64,000 nucleotides of DNA from Trichosphaerium sp. ATCC 40318 (taxonomy: Eukaryota; Protista; Tubulinea): assembly GCA_038496445.1 (NCBI GenBank), contig JALMLS010000627.1:124001-188000 (forward strand), in the 5' to 3' direction. Every line of letters begins with the position of its first letter. The first letter of the stretch is position 1. A model generated the notes under the pieces. The model was not told the DNA's origin. It worked only from the letters and a program-made list of their open reading frames with translations, and did no database searches. A program made the position numbers and the translations under genes. This document shows positions 49,000 through 57,131 of the stretch, in pieces.

Positions 49000-51900
49000 T
49001 TAAGCGGAGAATGTAGCTGTTGCTACGCTAACAAGAGCTTTTACGTCTACCAACCGCGTGCAGAACGAAACTGCAGAGCAGTTAGGTCTACCAAAATTTG
49101 TGTAAATTGTTCCTGAAACTAATGCGCCCGTCTGTGATTTTGCGTGTTGAGTGTGGAATAACTTTGCTTCGATATTATACTCTCCTGGCTGTGCGTGATG
49201 TATCAAATACTCAACTGGACCAAACCCACCTATTTATAGTGATTAGTTAAGCAGTGAAAACAACAAATAATAAAACCAAGTTTTTAAAAGTTCTTACCTG
49301 TAAAATCGCGAGAATGCAATCCACCACTTGGAGTCATATTTCTGAATGCGTTACATTTAGTACCATCAGGTTCTGTGACATGTAGTTCAATATCTGTCAT
49401 ATCACGATGCTAGAAACTCTAGTAAGCTTATTGTTTTGCAAAGTTTTTTTTGTTGTTTGAGAACAAAAAGAGAATGCCCGTACCCATTGAAGTACGATAC
49501 GTAGATCAACATCTAGAGGCTTAATAAGACGAGCATCAATCTTTTCGAATCTGACTTTATCAGTAAGGTTGTTATAGTGAATCTCTTGTATGATTGCATT
49601 AACATCACTAGAATAAAATGTATCAGCACTGTGTTAAGTTTTTTGAGTCATGGAGGTACGTTGTTGCGACCAACTCTATTTGAGAGAATCTATTATCCCA
49701 CTTTCTGGTTATGATATTATTAAGTAATTCAATAGCACGTTCGTAATCCGCTATGGTTTTCTCGGACTGATCAAACATTAGCAACTTGTTTTTTATTTAT
49801 TTTAAGTGCAGTACCTTCATCATTATAGCTAGAGCTAAGTCTCTATGACTCTGTGGTTCTTCTGGGCGCAATTTCAAAACTTTACCAAAGATACGAATAG
49901 CAGCGTGAAGGAATCCCTAAAGTAAAAAGTCAATAATTAGGGTTTTATAGCGAGTGGCAAAGTGTACCTTGAATGTCATTAAAACACGTGCGATTATACG
50001 CAACTGATGAGCATCTTCAAGAGAATTTTCGGCAATATTTGATAATACCATAGCGGCTACTTGTTTATCTCTAGTATCACGAATAACAGATAAAGCAAAG
50101 TCAATAAAATAGCCTGCTTCCTTTTCGTATTTCGTCCTGAATGTAACGTGCTTAGACAGCTTGTTTTCTACTGTCTTTTCGTTGTTAATAGCATTCCAAG
50201 CTGCGCTTTTGATTTGCCTATCGTTCAATTCAACTCTCCATGGGCTATCCTTGTTCGCTGATAGGTCTTCTTTGAGCTCTTCAAATTGCTTGTCATTCAA
50301 TTCCAGTATAGAAACTTTTTGACCTTTGTTTGCCTTGAGTATTTCTTTTTGGAGTCTTTCCTTCAAACCTTTTTCGCAGTAAGGCTACTGTACTTGGCTA
50401 CTTATAAGCGTACCTGGCATCACTTCACCTACTAGCGTGATATTGGCCAATAGGTCAGCTTGCTGTGTTGGGTCACACCGAGCAATGGCGTCCAGAATTT
50501 TCTGAAATGTTGTTAGAGGTGTTTGTACTGTAACTGTAAGAATGTTACCTGGTGTAAACCTTTTTGTCTTGAGCCAATAAAAGATGGTTGGAATATAGAC
50601 TCTGAAGCTCTGAATCTTTCCGTACCTATGATATAATTAATTTCAATTGTAATTAGCAAGAGTACGTACCAACAGTAAGCACTTGACCATCTTCCAATTC
50701 GTAAGATTTTTCTAAAGCTGAAGAAGATGCTGCTGTTTGCATCTCCTCATCAAAATCTGTACAATGAGTCACGTGAAAAAATATCACAAAGGAAAACCTG
50801 TTTTCACTTACCGTAAGACACATAGCATAGTTTCTGTGCAACACCAGATACATCCTTTTTATCCATAAAACCATATCTGACGAAAGAAAAATAAGTAAGA
50901 ATAAAATAAGAACCAACATAATATGACTTTAAAAAGCTTACCCTCTTTCATTCATTTGCTTATTTAGGAGATCAGTGACTTTATTAGAACCAATGGATGT
51001 TCTTTGTCTAGCTTCTTGTATTGGAGCGCCATCAATCATCTGAAAGAAAAAAATGGTTAGCTAAAAAAACCACTTGGTTTGTTTTCTTACTGGAACAATC
51101 TCGCATCCATCTTCTGTCCAGTGAAGTACAAGTTGTGGAGTTTTAATCTCTTTAAGTGATTCAACAACTTCATCTTCTTCTAGTCTCTCAACATAGAGCT
51201 CTTCAGGTTCTTCAATCAACATTTGATTAGATGATACAGCAAGTTCTGCTTTATTGTCGATAGATACTATTGAATCTGGCTCCATGAAATCACTCTCTGA
51301 TTCTTCTTCTTTCTCTTCGCATTCAGGCTCAAAATCAATATCAAACTTCTCATCAAGTTCCCAAATTGCTAAATTGCCGTCTGCACCTGCAGTAGAAAAT
51401 TGAACTGAAGAACGATCTGCTTTCATCAACTGAATAGAGTTTATAGCTCCCTAAAAAAACAAATTTTAGTAAGTACTCCAACAATCAGATGATCTTTCAA
51501 AATGGAAAAAAAGAGGAAAAGGGTAACAGAGAAATTAAAGTAAAGATTTTTGAGTCTTTCTAACCTTATGTGTTGATGCTACCTTCGGTTCAAACCTATC
51601 CACGCCTCTACTATCCATGCTCCTAAACCTACAAAATGCAGACATGGATGATCGTTTAGCTCTCTTTTCTTCTGTTTTCCAAAGACGTTTCTTTTCCTTT
51701 TTGTCTTTCTTTTTCTTTCGGTCTAGTTGGGCTATTTTGGAAGCGGAGGCTTTTTTTGCCAAAGAGAACGCTCTTAACTCGACTTTCGCTGTTTCTTCAC
51801 GTGGCTGTGCTTTACGTCGTTCAAGGTTCTTGTATCCAGAAACATCACTCTTTGAAGCAGACTTCTTTTTCCCCATTGGCCTACTCTCAGGTCTGACTTC

Positions 51901-54900
51901 TTTTTCTGACTTTTTTTCGGCGGACTCTTTTTTTGCCATTTTTCTACCTTTCCTTTTCCTTCTTGGAGCCTTCTTTTTCAAATCACTCGATGTGATTCTA
52001 GACGCTTCAAATAATGATATACTGTCTAATCTCTTATTTTGAGGCATTGATCGTATTTGTTCGTCTTGGCGTGTATCTGCAAGCCTCTGTAAAGATGCAT
52101 TGCTAGTCCGTCGTGCTGGTTTTCTGACAAGTCGCTCTTGCTCGTCAGCACGTGTATCTGTAAATCTTGCAAATGAATCCCTAGCTAGCCTTGATATGCT
52201 GGTAGACCGCACTGGCTCATCCTGACGTGTATCAGCATATCTTACAGCTCCGCTCTTCATCTTCTGTAGTTTGTTACGCATTGGCATAGCTCTTGGTGCT
52301 GCAAATCCCATTGGTGGACATCCCGGCATCGGCGGAGGTCTATTAGGCTGTATAGCTTGGTTTACCATGGCTGATGGACGAGGTGGTGGCGGAGCGTCGA
52401 TCATTGGTATAGGCGTTGCGTTCATTCTAGGAGGAAGTGGGGCACCTCCTAATGCTGGCCTTGCTCTACGTTGCGCAGAGGAGGTAGTAGACGTAGGTTT
52501 TCTACTCATTGGAGCCTTAATAGTTAATATGCCACGTTTAGATAAAGCTTCATCACCAACGTAGCAGTCTTTCTGGCCCATACCAACCTACCAAAAAGTC
52601 AAAAAAAAAAAAAAACAGGATTGAAAAAAACAAAAATGGCTATTCACCATACCATGACACCCATGTGGCGAGGTCTACCTACAATAGCTCTGAATACAGA
52701 ACGTGGTGCGTCATCACCTGCGAATCCTTTTTTGGGGAAGAAGTTGTTAGTAAACTAAAAATACAATGCGATTTTTTTTTTTGTTATTATTATACCTGCT
52801 TTAATGTTAAACAATCCGTTATCAATAACGATAGGGGTAATTTGATCAATGTCAATATCAATTGTATTAAATACCATTGGAGGTGGAACTGGTGGTGGTT
52901 TTGGAGCATTTAGATCTAACAAGCCATAAGCATTTGTATCATCCTGACCATCATCTTGTTTAACCCAATCGAAGTCTATAAGGAGTTAGCAAATGTCCTT
53001 AAATTAGTAACAGCTCTACTATATTGTTCTTTTTCATCAATGCTAGTGTATAAAAACCCGCACTCAAAAGTTTTATAACGGTGATAAGAGTGAAAGTTGA
53101 GTAAATTTTATAGCAGAGATAATGTACCAATGAACTCCATTTCTGGCTTCATCTCAATTGCCCAACATGTAGTGTGACCTCCTTTGGATCCTTCAGTAAG
53201 GTCTACAAAGCCAAGCATAGCAGACTGATAAGCTGGCTTTACACTACCCATATACAGATCGTATTCTGTGAAGTCATAATCGTTTAAAGTAACCAAATGG
53301 TTCGCAACTGGATCTCCAAGAGACTCTTTGTAATAATCTACAAAATCAAGAAACTGAGATGATCCAAAAGAAGTAGAATAAGCAGCATTCCACCAGGCTT
53401 TTTTAAATAAAACGTCAGTACATGTCATCGAGATAAAGACAAAGTTGTTTTACTTCAACAAAAAAAAGAGGGTTAAAAAACCCACAAAGGTGGTACCTAT
53501 TCTTCTGTTCCACATTTGAAGTACATACTGGATTTTCTCTTCGTCTAAATCTCTTTGCTTCTTTTTCTTAACTTCCATGATCTCCATGTACTTCTCATAC
53601 CACTCTATTCGATATTAAGTTGATATTATGGATTGTATTAAACTATCACTAAAAACGAACCTGTCATTGCCTTTGGAGGCTCAATTTCGTACTTCACGTA
53701 TTGATCAAAGTTTTCAAGAACAATCAGAGAAGTATGGGGAGATATGATACCATGAGCACGACCTAGAGCTAAGAATGTAGATATATGCTCCTTCTGCTCA
53801 TCTTCTTCAAGCTCCAACAGTGCTACACCCATACATTAACGCTTGTGCTCACAAAACACAAAGAGGTTTGGTGGTATAAAGAAGAAATCAGCGTACCATC
53901 AATCTTTTTCTTTGCCCAAAATCTAGGTATGAGTTCATCAACGATAATATCTGATTTTTCGGGCATGGAAATCGTAAACTGTTTCTTCTCGATAATCTTC
54001 TGCGCAGTCCCAAACACTTACAAATAAAACGTTATTGACAATCGCTATTTTACTATACCTTAGGCGTACCTAGTGTTATTTTCACTGGTTTGGTGATACC
54101 AGGAAGTGTAGATCCACATAAGGAAAACATGCCGTTCGATTCCAATGTCACCACATTTCTGTAAAAAAAAGTTAGGAAGGGATTGTATGTACAAGAACTA
54201 CCTTGGAAAGAGTTTTTCAGCATCGATTTGTTTCTCATCATATTCTGCGTATAAGAAAGATACTTCTTGTGCACCTGTGAGTTTATTGACTGCCGCAGTG
54301 ATATTATTTGGTTGCTCCTAAGATGTACATTAACACCTTCCTTAATATGACTTTTATCATTTTACCTTTAAGTTGGTGTAGGAACCACCACTGTTCTTTG
54401 CCCATCTCTTAAGTGATCGGAAATCAGCTTTAGCTTCGCAGCTAAATATATGAAGAGGACATTGTATCTAAACATATTAAGCGACAACACCAAGAAGGGA
54501 CAAAAACTAATGACTTTTTGTAATCCAAAAACAAAAAGGTTAAAATCGTACTTGTTGAATAGGCTCGTTTGATAATGAATTAATACCGTTGGTAAACATC
54601 AAAGCGAACATATATTCGCCCGAAGCATTCGGTACACCCATTGCTCTTCGGCTACGAAGGACACGGATATCTCCAAAATCAGTACCTTAAATAGCTTAAG
54701 TTAACAGAACTTATAACAAAAAAATAGCTGGTGAGCCAAAAGCAAGACATACCGCCATCATAAAAAGTATTGTTAATATGGTTTGTAACACTTGATATTT
54801 GTCCTCTAGTAATATTAAACGTTTTGATATCTGTGTCAACCATATTACGAAAAAAGATAACATCAATTGTGCACGTGTTAAAATGCCCAGAAATTAACTT

Positions 54901-56202
54901 GGTAAGGATTGACTGATAAGTGCTAATATTTGCCTTGTTATCTTGAGACCTTGAAGAGTCCCATAGCAAGCAAATATTAGGGTTTGAAGGCATTGATCCT
55001 GTACTACAAAGGCATTAATCTTGAGACTGTACTGGGATTGTTTTGAAAAAAGACGCACGATGACTGAATTGGGATTACGTCAGCAATCGAAAAGTCACAA
55101 GGTTTTGACTCGCTCGCTTTAGAAGCTATTAGAAAACTAGAAGCTGAAAGCTTCAAGGTAATACTATGTGATTTTGGTGCGACTTTCATATTGGTCATGG
55201 AGCTCTGAGCCCGGGAATCCTACGCAGAGGTAAGCGAGCAATTTAATCTATTTTATAACTAAACCACGAACACTATTATTGCTCAAGGTCATGCCCTTAA
55301 ATACTCCTGTGCCTGTTACAATACAATCAAGATTACACCCTTGTGAAGCTGCAATCTAACAGGAAACAAAGTTAATTTCATGACGAGCGTAAGGCGATGG
55401 ATTACGTTGAACATAGTTTTAAACGTATCAATTTTCTCAGTTTGACCAAAAGAAAGTCCTAAATTGTACGAAGCAGACTTCGTACTACCGCCTACACTAG
55501 AGTTAACAACCAAAAAGTAGTGAATATTTTGTACTCTTGACGATATTAAGCTGTTGAAAGTACGTCACACGGAGCTGTCTTGATCCCTTTTGCTGAGTTA
55601 GAAAAAGCAAGATTTGCTTGACAATCTGTTCGTACTTTTTTAGGCACGGGGTAAACACGTGTTTTATATACGTTGCCAACAACTTGCTCTATTATTGAAG
55701 GTGCTGATTTATTCTCCCTTCTCTCTGTTTCAAAGGCAACTCTCGATTTCTCTTTTTCTACAACGACCTGTACAATTGCAGTGAGCAACATAATTATTGC
55801 CAAAATAAGCTTATCCACTCAGGTGAGAGTTTGTGGCTTGGTTTTGGTTTTATTTTGTTTGAATGCTAACGTACACCTTCAACCATCACACCTTTTACGT
55901 CGCAAGCGTATCCACATACAGATGACCCTGTTTGGTACATGAGGTTAATAAATAAAAATAGGTTCGGTTAGAATACCTTCTGTTAGAGGTACCACAAGCT
56001 CTGCTTCGAAAGCTTCGTTCAAATTGTTTTTAAAAACCATATCAAGGGTAGTTTGCGCTAAAAACCCATTTATAACAACCGTGGCAGTTATCTAATAGCG
56101 TTGAGGAATATACAACGTTATAATATCGGTTTTATCTACCTCTTGTAACGGTATTGTTATTCCTCTGTCTTTTACCTCTAAACGAAGTAATTGATCACTC
56201 AT
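49000..56202 (-). CDS. VIT-vWA-[actin N-fragment / Pro-Lys linker / ARPC1 C-fragment / actin core fragment]-TPR-DUF2135(YfaP) fusion protein
   Basis: VIT ([20 protein letters not shown]), vWA ([12 protein letters not shown]|T), HTSLIVLE, actin segments, WD40 blade, TPR ([14 protein letters not shown]), DUF2135 ([23 protein letters not shown]|GFGPVEY). Junctions across the insert are in frame. Confidence 0.85.
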
Positions 56203-56450
56203 TAGTTGTATTATTCGTATACAATGGTTTGACTGTGCAATAGTCTCAAAAAAAAAGTCTTGGTTTTCAGATTCAATGAAAAAAAACTTGACAGAAATTT
56301 TGCGAAGTTGACGGTAAACCAATTCATTGTTTCGCAATGTTGAAGGTTTGTATCATGTAACTTACAAATATAGACAAAAAGGTCGTGCAATCAATATATT
56401 CTGTGGAACACAAGTAGTAAAAAAAGCTGTATGTACATTTGTGGTTTTTT

Positions 56451-57131
56451 TTACTTTTTTTCTGTAAAGCCACCAGTGGAGCCAAATCCACCGCTACCTC
56501 TAGAAGTGTCATCTAGATCTTCAACTTGTTGTACAGGAGGTGTAGAGCATTTCTCTAGGATGAGTTGAGCGACGCGGTCGCCAACAGAAACTAAAAATCG
56601 TTAGCAATTCTGTACTTGATTTTTTTCTCGTTTTTGAGCGTTGCACGCCTTATGCATACACACGAAACTCTACATTCGGTTTTGGATAATGTTAGAAAGA
56701 GTACGCATACCTTTAAAGTTTGTTTGAGCATGGTTAAACAAAACTACGCCTACGGATCCTCTGTAATCTCTATCGATAACACCAGCTATAAAAACGGCGT
56801 GTTAGCAAGAGCGAAAAAACAAAGCGGGAAAAATTTTTCGGCGCGAAGTAAACTAAACAATACGTACCGCCTACATCTATGTGTTGCTTCCACGCAAGAC
56901 CAGATCTAGGAGCAATACGGCCATAATGACCCTCTGGAACCGCAATAGCAATATCTGTCTTCACCAACGCTTTACCTTGCGCAGAGATAACCTTACGTAA
57001 AACTTAAGTTTAAAAAAGTAACGTTTCTAGCTTACGCATTCTTGGGAAGCATACAAATCGTATCCAGCCGCCATATTAGAACCACGTGTTGGCAATTTGG
57101 CTGTTTGAGCGAGTAATTTTACCTTTAGCAT
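56451..57131 (-). CDS. DUT: dUTP pyrophosphatase (trimeric dUTPase)
   Basis: [43 protein letters not shown]. Confidence 0.97.

Follow-up and report, generated by a model that had tools for sequence, protein, structure and literature searches.

In the window analysed here, a stretch of 64,000 nucleotides from Trichosphaerium sp. ATCC 40318 (assembly GCA_038496445.1, contig JALMLS010000627.1, positions 124,001 to 188,000), the minus strand from 56202 to 49000 carries a gene in which pieces of actin are embedded in a protein scaffold of bacterial type. Hand splicing and colinearity with relatives gave a single open frame over this segment, comprising a VIT domain, a von Willebrand factor A (vWA) region, a long insert, tetratricopeptide repeats (TPR) and a DUF2135 domain. 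The initial annotation had proposed a single gene whose VIT-vWA-TPR-DUF2135 scaffold of bacterial type carries actin pieces in frame, and Pfam matches, the splice model, blastp and colinearity all agree with this proposal. The segment is very probably one protein-coding gene of about 1,700-1,750 codons with coding actin exons.

The minus strand of 49000-56202 consists of numerous short open segments, as in intron-rich eukaryotic genes. From 53604 to 49000, hand splicing joined 17 exons (Ca to Cq) with 1161 codons in one frame. All 16 introns of this central and C-terminal part (44-152 nt) have GT-AG borders and a donor starting with GTA, and their acceptors follow pyrimidine runs; the in-frame GT-AG junctions of the initial annotation were hereby reproduced and extended to 16 introns. 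The N-terminal part was spliced by hand into five exons (E1-E5) from the ATG at 56202, and the vWA and post-vWA exons (55500-53665) were placed by similarity colinear with relatives. The introns, for example that at 52795-52727, are very short, and several of them contain yeast-like TACTAAC or CTAAC branch motifs.

Separate genes for VIT-vWA, for an actin-related protein with a long insert and for TPR-DUF2135, or a misassembly joining them, could give a similar picture, and RNA-type runs contain only 14-18% of the words of the window. This explanation is nevertheless highly improbable, given that the frame is continuous at all junctions with uniform splice signals, that the model has no start or stop signals between the parts and that the same order occurs in a single open reading frame (ORF) of the relative P0149 described below. 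In addition, exon Cl (50368-49968) encodes the last actin residues, LKERLQKEI (~311-318), and then the pre-TPR helices of the scaffold with no intron between them. Since this one exon holds both parts, insert and scaffold are physically joined. Its scaffold part aligned to P0001, a eukaryotic transcript product, and to the bacterial protein L003 from residue 747. With a codon table trained on the scaffold exons, 10 of 10 insert exons scored best in the frame of the model. Exons Cf-Ck contain no stop in 255 codons (p ~2e-8 at the stop density of introns), and the GC content is 0.41 in exons versus 0.30 in introns.

The scaffold begins with exon E1 (56202-56140), which encodes an N terminus colinear with P0149 and without a signal peptide. 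The VIT domain occupies E2 (56091-55977), E3 (55927-55875) and E4 (55767-55636), colinear with residues 46-140 of L003 and 27-151 of P0149, and ends in E5 (55592-55511), whose 3′ boundary is uncertain and which was aligned by tblastn with L003 residues 134-153. Pfam matched VIT in two exon ORFs, 55948-56091 and 55549-55818 (E 9e-5 and 1.6e-4). The blocks at 55500-53665 are colinear with L003, with L060, a second bacterial protein, and with P0149. In the vWA region, the stretch around the DxSxS motif (LLWDSSRSQ, ~54975-54751) and the MFTNG motif aligned with L060 and P0149, and the post-vWA block TSLIVLE (53796-53665), of the form TS(L/F)(I/V), is 48-68% identical to L003, L060 and P0149. Exon Ca (53604-53497) encodes a post-vWA helix with MWNRRI as its last residues, and its junction with exon Cb, MWNRRI/AWWN, corresponds to MWKRRIAWWN in P0149 and MWQERVKWWE in the bacterial proteins. 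Downstream of the insert, TPR and the DUF2135 beta-sandwich are encoded by exons Cm (49916-49815), Cn (49766-49660), Co (49607-49484), Cp (49409-49298) and Cq (49229-49000), the last of which includes the stop codon. In single segments Pfam also matched TPR weakly, and DUF2135 at 49003-49233 reached 21.7 bits on one exon, where the cut-off is 22. Among the domains named by the initial annotation, VIT, Actin and DUF2135 were thus recovered by Pfam, but vWA was not, with no Pfam vWA match on single window exons, nor on P0149 or L003. An upstream neighbouring ORF on the minus strand (56770-56967) has a dUTPase-like motif and sets the 5′ bound of the gene.

The bacterial proteins L003 (1014 aa) and L060 (1002 aa) match VIT, TPR and DUF2135 in Pfam and have hydrophobic leaders or signal peptides. 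L003 is colinear with the window gene over residues 46-598 (56079-53498) and 747-1014 (50138-49009), and the insert thereby falls in the position of the bacterial linker between the post-vWA helices and TPR, which is ~150 residues long and of low complexity in the bacteria; the window gene has an insert of ~800 residues there. With L003 747-1014, tblastn found the C-terminal module of the window at E 3e-37, and this module also aligned in full to P0001. In genomes of bacterial species the TPR-DUF2135 module is encoded at no fewer than 587 loci, and a profile of the module matched many bacterial TPR/DUF2135 proteins and a few eukaryotic ones, the latter being a Pelomyxa 'YfaP family protein' (P0018), P0065 from EukProt and P0001 on L001, a JGI transcript contig. 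The AlphaFold2 (AF2) model of the module displays TPR-like helices and then a beta-sandwich; in a Foldseek search the model found only generic TPR proteins and the beta-sandwich found no match. Neither NCBIfam nor PADLOC gave a name or a defence model for the bacterial relatives. Among 1.84 billion representatives, the exon at 49920-50384 matched P0001 and one unrelated protein with TPR, and nothing else, from which it follows that the protein collections lack the product of the window gene itself. Judged by domain order and alignment, the window gene belongs to a putatively cytosolic, eukaryotic branch of the bacterial-type VIT-vWA-TPR-DUF2135 family.

Two of the eukaryotic matches displayed features of their own. 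In L001:1-800, a K/E/R-rich ORF and the acidic, Ser-rich start of the module ORF lie in different frames with an A-rich run at ~540-570, possibly owing to a frameshift in sequencing or to an intron that was retained, and the 1.9-kb 3′ part of L001 contains no actin piece. In P0065 (a Trinity ORF of 464 aa from another organism), TPR-DUF2135 is directly preceded by a kinase of AGC type that is reduced to its C-lobe (Pfam Pkinase profile 154-263), so that host-protein pieces of a second kind occur on this scaffold.

The variable insert starts with exon Cb (53397-53128; 89 codons), which scores best as coding in the model frame and gave no Pfam match and no useful match in an Atlas search. Exon Cc (52975-52796) contains an acidic stretch, polyproline (52907-52878) and actin ~5-20 with a degenerate first phosphate loop, followed by actin 21-44 in Cd (52726-52653; Pfam Actin E 1e-4). 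The 335-codon open exon Ce (52587-51583) encodes actin 45-70, that is the remaining D-loop to ILTIKAP, and then a Pro-rich tract (52449-52279), three ADTRQDE repeats (52242-52057), a K-rich tract (51984-51652) and an ARPC1-like helix (51651-51604; ARPC1A match). In Cf (51450-51091), one WD40-type blade (51450-51349) and an acidic tract (51348-51142) precede the start of the actin C half from 51132. Actin ~165-310 is spread over Cg (51039-50942), Ch (50876-50812), Ci (50756-50670), Cj (50625-50549) and Ck (50501-50414), and a well-kept island (actin 216-270) lies at 50833-50573 within this stretch (51039-50414). The sequence at 52587-52630 is a T-rich intron end with the first exon base. By eye, a thymosin/WH2-like stretch was noted at 52020-51970 (minus strand), without Pfam support.

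Three exon ORFs, each on its own, matched Actin in Pfam (52647-52754, 50516-50746 and 50388-50636), and the profile positions of the three segments were 17-42, 269-294 and 299-333. When the spliced model was compared with an actin by blastp, model residues 167-237 matched actin 3-73 (72% identity, E 4e-28) and 648-832 matched actin 149-339 (34% identity, E 6e-33). The initial annotation had stated that the D-loop with subdomain 2 and subdomain 4 are the best-kept parts, and regional counts, with the actin portion of P0137 as the amoebozoan reference, gave the same result. Identical residues numbered 44/52 (85%) in actin 21-72, which is subdomain 2 with the D-loop, and 40/55 (73%) in actin 216-270, which is subdomain 4 with the plug, compared with 5/16 in 148-180, 10/32 in 181-215 and 8/30 in 271-300. 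The difference between the two islands and the remainder (25-31%) is significant (Fisher p 3e-6), and the island at 216-270 contains a 17-residue run typical of amoebozoan actins.

Actin is present in the window gene only as residues ~5-70 and ~150-318; residues 71-149 and 319-375 are absent, in line with the earlier claim that the middle of actin and its C-terminus are degenerate or missing. The claimed loss of the phosphate loops was likewise found, with DNGLFN in place of DNGSG in the first and HWTEDG in place of DSGDG in the second. The insert thus does not comprise a full four-subdomain actin fold (~375 residues, PF00022), and it cannot be an ATP-binding actin because it has lost both phosphate loops as well as most of subdomain 1. 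Neutral evolution of the actin pieces, which the initial annotation had named as an outcome that would speak against it, does not fit the N-terminal piece: between the window and the metagenome scaffold L083, actin 21-70 has a proportion of synonymous differences (pS) of 0.81, which is saturated, versus a nonsynonymous proportion (pN) of 0.14.

The closest relative in architecture is P0149 on contig L087 (JGI 3300050380, Ga0506620_001279), a protein of 1666 aa encoded by a single ORF of 5001 nt on a contig of 5169 nt. Pfam matched VIT (21-132), Actin (773-836, profile 5-63) and DUF2135 (1606-1652), and the protein is colinear with the window gene, including the MWNRRI/AWWN junction and the position of the actin piece. 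Like the window gene, P0149 has VIT, a vWA-like region, the MW.RRIAWWN helix, actin ~1-71 followed by Pro-rich sequence, TPR and DUF2135, and is without a signal peptide. It differs in having a long coiled-coil before actin and neither the actin C half nor the ARPC1-like piece, and the scaffolds are ~30-65% identical. P0149 is the best available support that the scaffold and the actin N piece would form one message in this family.

The N piece occurs more widely. A search with the linker ORF gave actin-word matches only, among them P0004 on L083. This GC-rich metagenome scaffold encodes on one strand vWA exons of VWA_3 type, polyproline, actin 1-70 ending in ILTMKSP, and Pro-rich and K-rich tracts, and in P0004/L083, as in exon Ce, actin 45-70 continues as a Pro-rich tract. 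L083 was considered as an orthologue of the window gene and rejected, since its VWA_3-type vWA does not align to that of the window; it is a VWA5A/PARP4-type gene. A DNA pattern for a 12-residue actin stretch detected three further metagenome loci (L084, L085 and L086). L084, a contig of 6.9 kb, has one ORF of 2006 codons with the architecture of PARP4, namely BRCT, PARP_reg, PARP, VIT, VWA_3 and then Actin (profile 6-64, 45 bits). When the actin region of L084 was used as query against proteins of 1100-3500 residues, PARP4 and PARP4-like proteins of sponges, cnidarians, a ctenophore, molluscs, hemichordates and Capsaspora were found together with an Anaeramoeba 'VWA5A', all with Pfam Actin, and P0149 came from this search as well. 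The match in these long proteins covers residues ~5-73 only, at 47-75% identity, the exception being the Anaeramoeba protein, in which actin is almost whole and in permuted order. In this protein (P0109, Anaeramoeba flamelloides, 1185 aa), actin 44-372 and then 10-50 stand in the post-vWA place; either the actin is permuted or the gene model is a fusion.

The actin ~5-73 module was found after vWA in at least 20 PARP4/VWA5A-type proteins. The block GVMVGMGQKD.Y.G.EA, comprising the D-loop and its flanks, is invariant in the alignments, the first phosphate loop is degenerate, and a family-specific ending xSPF stands where actin has KYPI. The window copy possesses all invariant residues of the module and ends at ILTIKAP. 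Because P0149 and the PARP4/VWA5A-type proteins carry the same piece, the actin N piece is an old module of the family and not a local oddity, and the alignments show it to be, as far as sequence comparison reaches, a strongly constrained module of VIT-vWA proteins. The architecture had been thought undescribed, and no paper on it was found; it is not unique, though, as public protein sets contain P0149 and dozens of PARP4/VWA5A-type proteins that share actin ~5-73.

P0149 and 35 other relatives lack the motifs of the actin C half and those of the ARPC1-like piece, and only these two elements appear special to the window gene. With its amoebozoan actin signature, the C half looks like a later addition in the lineage of this gene. 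The N module might be functional family heritage and the C half and the ARPC1-like piece exonised remains of captured gene fragments, tolerated in a disordered linker without a function of their own. Their restriction to this gene would suit such an origin, as would the identity to actin of only 25-31% over much of the C half and the low-complexity, variable linkers of all relatives. We consider it improbable, as the 255 codons, interrupted by six introns, contain neither a stop nor a frameshift and resemble the scaffold in codon usage, and neutral decay would be expected to be even, whereas an island of 73% stands in the C half among parts of 25-31% (p 3e-6).

The piece between the actin halves is a marginal match, although a colinear one. 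In the 69-residue splice of the end of Ce with Cf, the best single stretch is human ARPC1A 294-357 (15.7 bits), namely the insert helix (aligned to MSAMERFRNMDKRA) and then the last blade, in the same order. Other matches of this piece reached at most 7.7 bits per stretch, with similar totals obtained by summing several WD repeats. Over whole sequences, ARPC1A gave E 0.004, which is no better than LST8 or CFAP52, and exon Cf alone matched only generic WD40 proteins in the PDB. The seven-bladed propeller of ARPC1 is represented by one blade-like unit (51450-51349). The ARPC1 fragment of the initial annotation is accordingly a marginal assignment: the piece may be ARPC1-like, and its E-value equals those of generic WD40 proteins.

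The order of the insert, from polyproline through actin 5-70, the Pro-rich and K-rich spacer, the ARPC1-like helix with one WD blade and the acidic tract to actin ~150-318, suggests how it may act. In actin filaments, the longitudinal and lateral contacts are made by the D-loop, residues 241-247 and the plug, and the insert helix of ARPC1 binds the barbed-face groove of the mother filament. Actin 5-70 would provide the first strands of subdomain 1 and all of subdomain 2 with an intact D-loop. Since the kept surfaces are those of the pointed face of actin and the nucleotide loops are gone, the insert may be a nucleotide-free mimic that engages readers of pointed-face surfaces, and it probably functions by mimicry of actin surfaces. 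The scaffold would display the D-loop, residues 241-247 and the plug. Their most likely docking site would be the barbed-face cleft, in actin monomers or at the barbed ends of filaments, with assistance from polyproline (profilin) and from the helix of ARPC1 type, and the VIT-vWA-TPR-DUF2135 scaffold would as a result be tethered to actin or filaments would be capped. Such docking, in which the protein would tether or cap and its polyproline would recruit profilin, is a tentative proposal to which we give somewhat less than even weight; a WH2 motif in the same region of the PARP4 of Oscarella counts in its favour.

Several observations weigh against this interpretation. About 80% of subdomain 1 is missing, which makes a native actin-like fold doubtful, and AF2 modelled the isolated N module with confidence for the first three strands only, with a low confidence (pLDDT 47-58) for the D-loop and the remainder; taken by itself, we regard the outcome of this modelling as neutral. 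The ARPC1 match is marginal (E 0.004), neither it nor the actin C half occurs in any other relative examined, and the window protein is absent from collections. Unrelated partial domains also adjoin actin 5-73 in PARP4 linkers, which an actin-specific tether leaves unexplained. Besides actin, the post-vWA linkers contain a 14-3-3 C half and WH2 in Oscarella (P0103), a 14-3-3 C half in Capsaspora (P0105), ubiquitin and a synaptobrevin piece in Dysidea (P0097) and an HSP70 substrate-binding piece in Magallana (P0164).

These mixed arrays are better explained if the variable VIT-vWA linker shows pieces of host hub proteins as bait to pathogen factors by which those proteins are bound, modified or cleaved, with an actin and Arp2/3 theme in the window gene. 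PARP4 linkers array partial domains of unrelated hub proteins (14-3-3 C half, ubiquitin, HSP70, a synaptobrevin SNARE piece and actin 5-73), in P0065 a kinase C-lobe stands before the same TPR-DUF2135 module, and amoebozoan NACHT-TPR proteins end in actin. In vertebrate PARP4 the corresponding region is disordered and under strong positive selection, and a contact with viral proteins was proposed (PMC4038475), which would fit a bait. The conservation of the actin module is not in conflict with this, for a mimic of an invariant target would stay conserved too. On the other hand, the module is stable from Capsaspora to molluscs, which is unusual for parts in an arms race, each of the listed pieces is also an ordinary protein-binding module so that an adaptor would fit equally, PADLOC assigns none of its defence models to the bacterial relatives, and the window gene has no link to a signalling or death domain. 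No NB-ARC or NACHT match was found in the scanned exon ORFs of the window gene or in P0149. We regard the bait function as possible but rather unlikely, and similarly doubtful is its mechanistic part, in which engagement or cleavage between the VIT-vWA half and the TPR-DUF2135 half would serve as signal or trap.

Extended to PARP4, VWA5A-like and DUF2135 types, VIT-vWA scaffolds could be pan-eukaryotic sensors or traps whose hypervariable linkers bait pathogen effectors, a generalisation that we find unlikely as it stands. The assignment of the individual baits, being the actin D-loop module, 14-3-3, ubiquitin, HSP70, SNARE, histones and kinases, is speculative and equally unlikely. If it were true, the window gene would be the actin/Arp2/3-themed member of an expanded amoebal repertoire, and the positive selection in exon 30 of vertebrate PARP4 would be a remnant of the same system. 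Amoebozoan proteins containing actin, for example from Balamuthia, were also collected (P0141, P0123, P0111, P0127, P0128, P0130, P0136; P0152, P0140, P0133-P0135, P0139, P0142-P0145); some consist of NACHT, TPR and a whole actin at the C-terminal end, and others have Sec23/24-trunk or vWA_2 after a whole actin.

Mimicry of actin surfaces, the interpretation we prefer, bears on a protein family that is old and widespread and has poorly understood functions, including PARP4 (vault PARP) and VWA5A. A nearly invariant actin D-loop module in a variable linker, present from amoebae to molluscs, offers a testable handle on the contacts of VIT-vWA proteins and ties in with the so far unexplained positive selection on the corresponding region of PARP4 in vertebrates. 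Of the actin-themed examples found here, the window gene is the richest, with the N piece, the C half and the ARPC1-like piece on an otherwise typically bacterial scaffold, and it would be a suitable construct for assays of binding, capping and infection. An actin piece of ~70 residues common to many eukaryotic VIT-vWA proteins, including invertebrate PARP4, is apparently an undescribed pattern. Literature searches in full text gave nothing on DUF2135 or on PARP4 with an actin domain, and no paper was found on the actin 5-73 module or on the other domain pieces in PARP4 linkers. A survey of the VIT/vWFA family from 2023, which places bacteria and some protists in one clade, contains no occurrence of actin (PMC10539598).

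Compared with known systems, the window gene may be likened to plant NLR integrated decoys, the NLRP1 tripwire and the bait region of alpha2-macroglobulin, in which a constant scaffold holds a variable stretch that mimics the host. This would be a functional analogy only; the window gene, unlike those systems, has no NB-ARC/NACHT, death-fold or thioester domain. The family of Dictyostelium Vwa1 and human VWA5A (PMC10539598) resembles the gene in an intracellular VIT-Hyb-vWFA, a helical bundle and a heterogeneous C-terminal part, and differs in that no actin piece or DUF2135 tail is mentioned for it in that survey. PARP4 proteins have BRCT and PARP domains, a vWA of VWA_3 type and another C-terminal region without TPR-DUF2135, and their linkers, unlike that of the window gene, include 14-3-3, ubiquitin, HSP70, synaptobrevin and WH2 pieces. 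No PARP part (BRCT and catalytic, before VIT) was found in the window gene, which, like P0149, starts at VIT, and the upstream ORF piece at 56095-56352 gave no PARP match. Common to the window gene, PARP4 and the Anaeramoeba 'VWA5A' are VIT-vWA and a variable, often proline-rich linker with actin ~5-73, in which the D-loop block is invariant and the phosphate loop degenerate. The bacterial proteins L003:3778-6819 (Planctomycetaceae) and L060:3811-6816 (Micavibrio) have signal peptides, an Ala/Pro/Glu-rich linker, no host-protein pieces and no introns, and share with the window gene the order of VIT, vWA region, post-vWA helices, TPR and DUF2135 sandwich.

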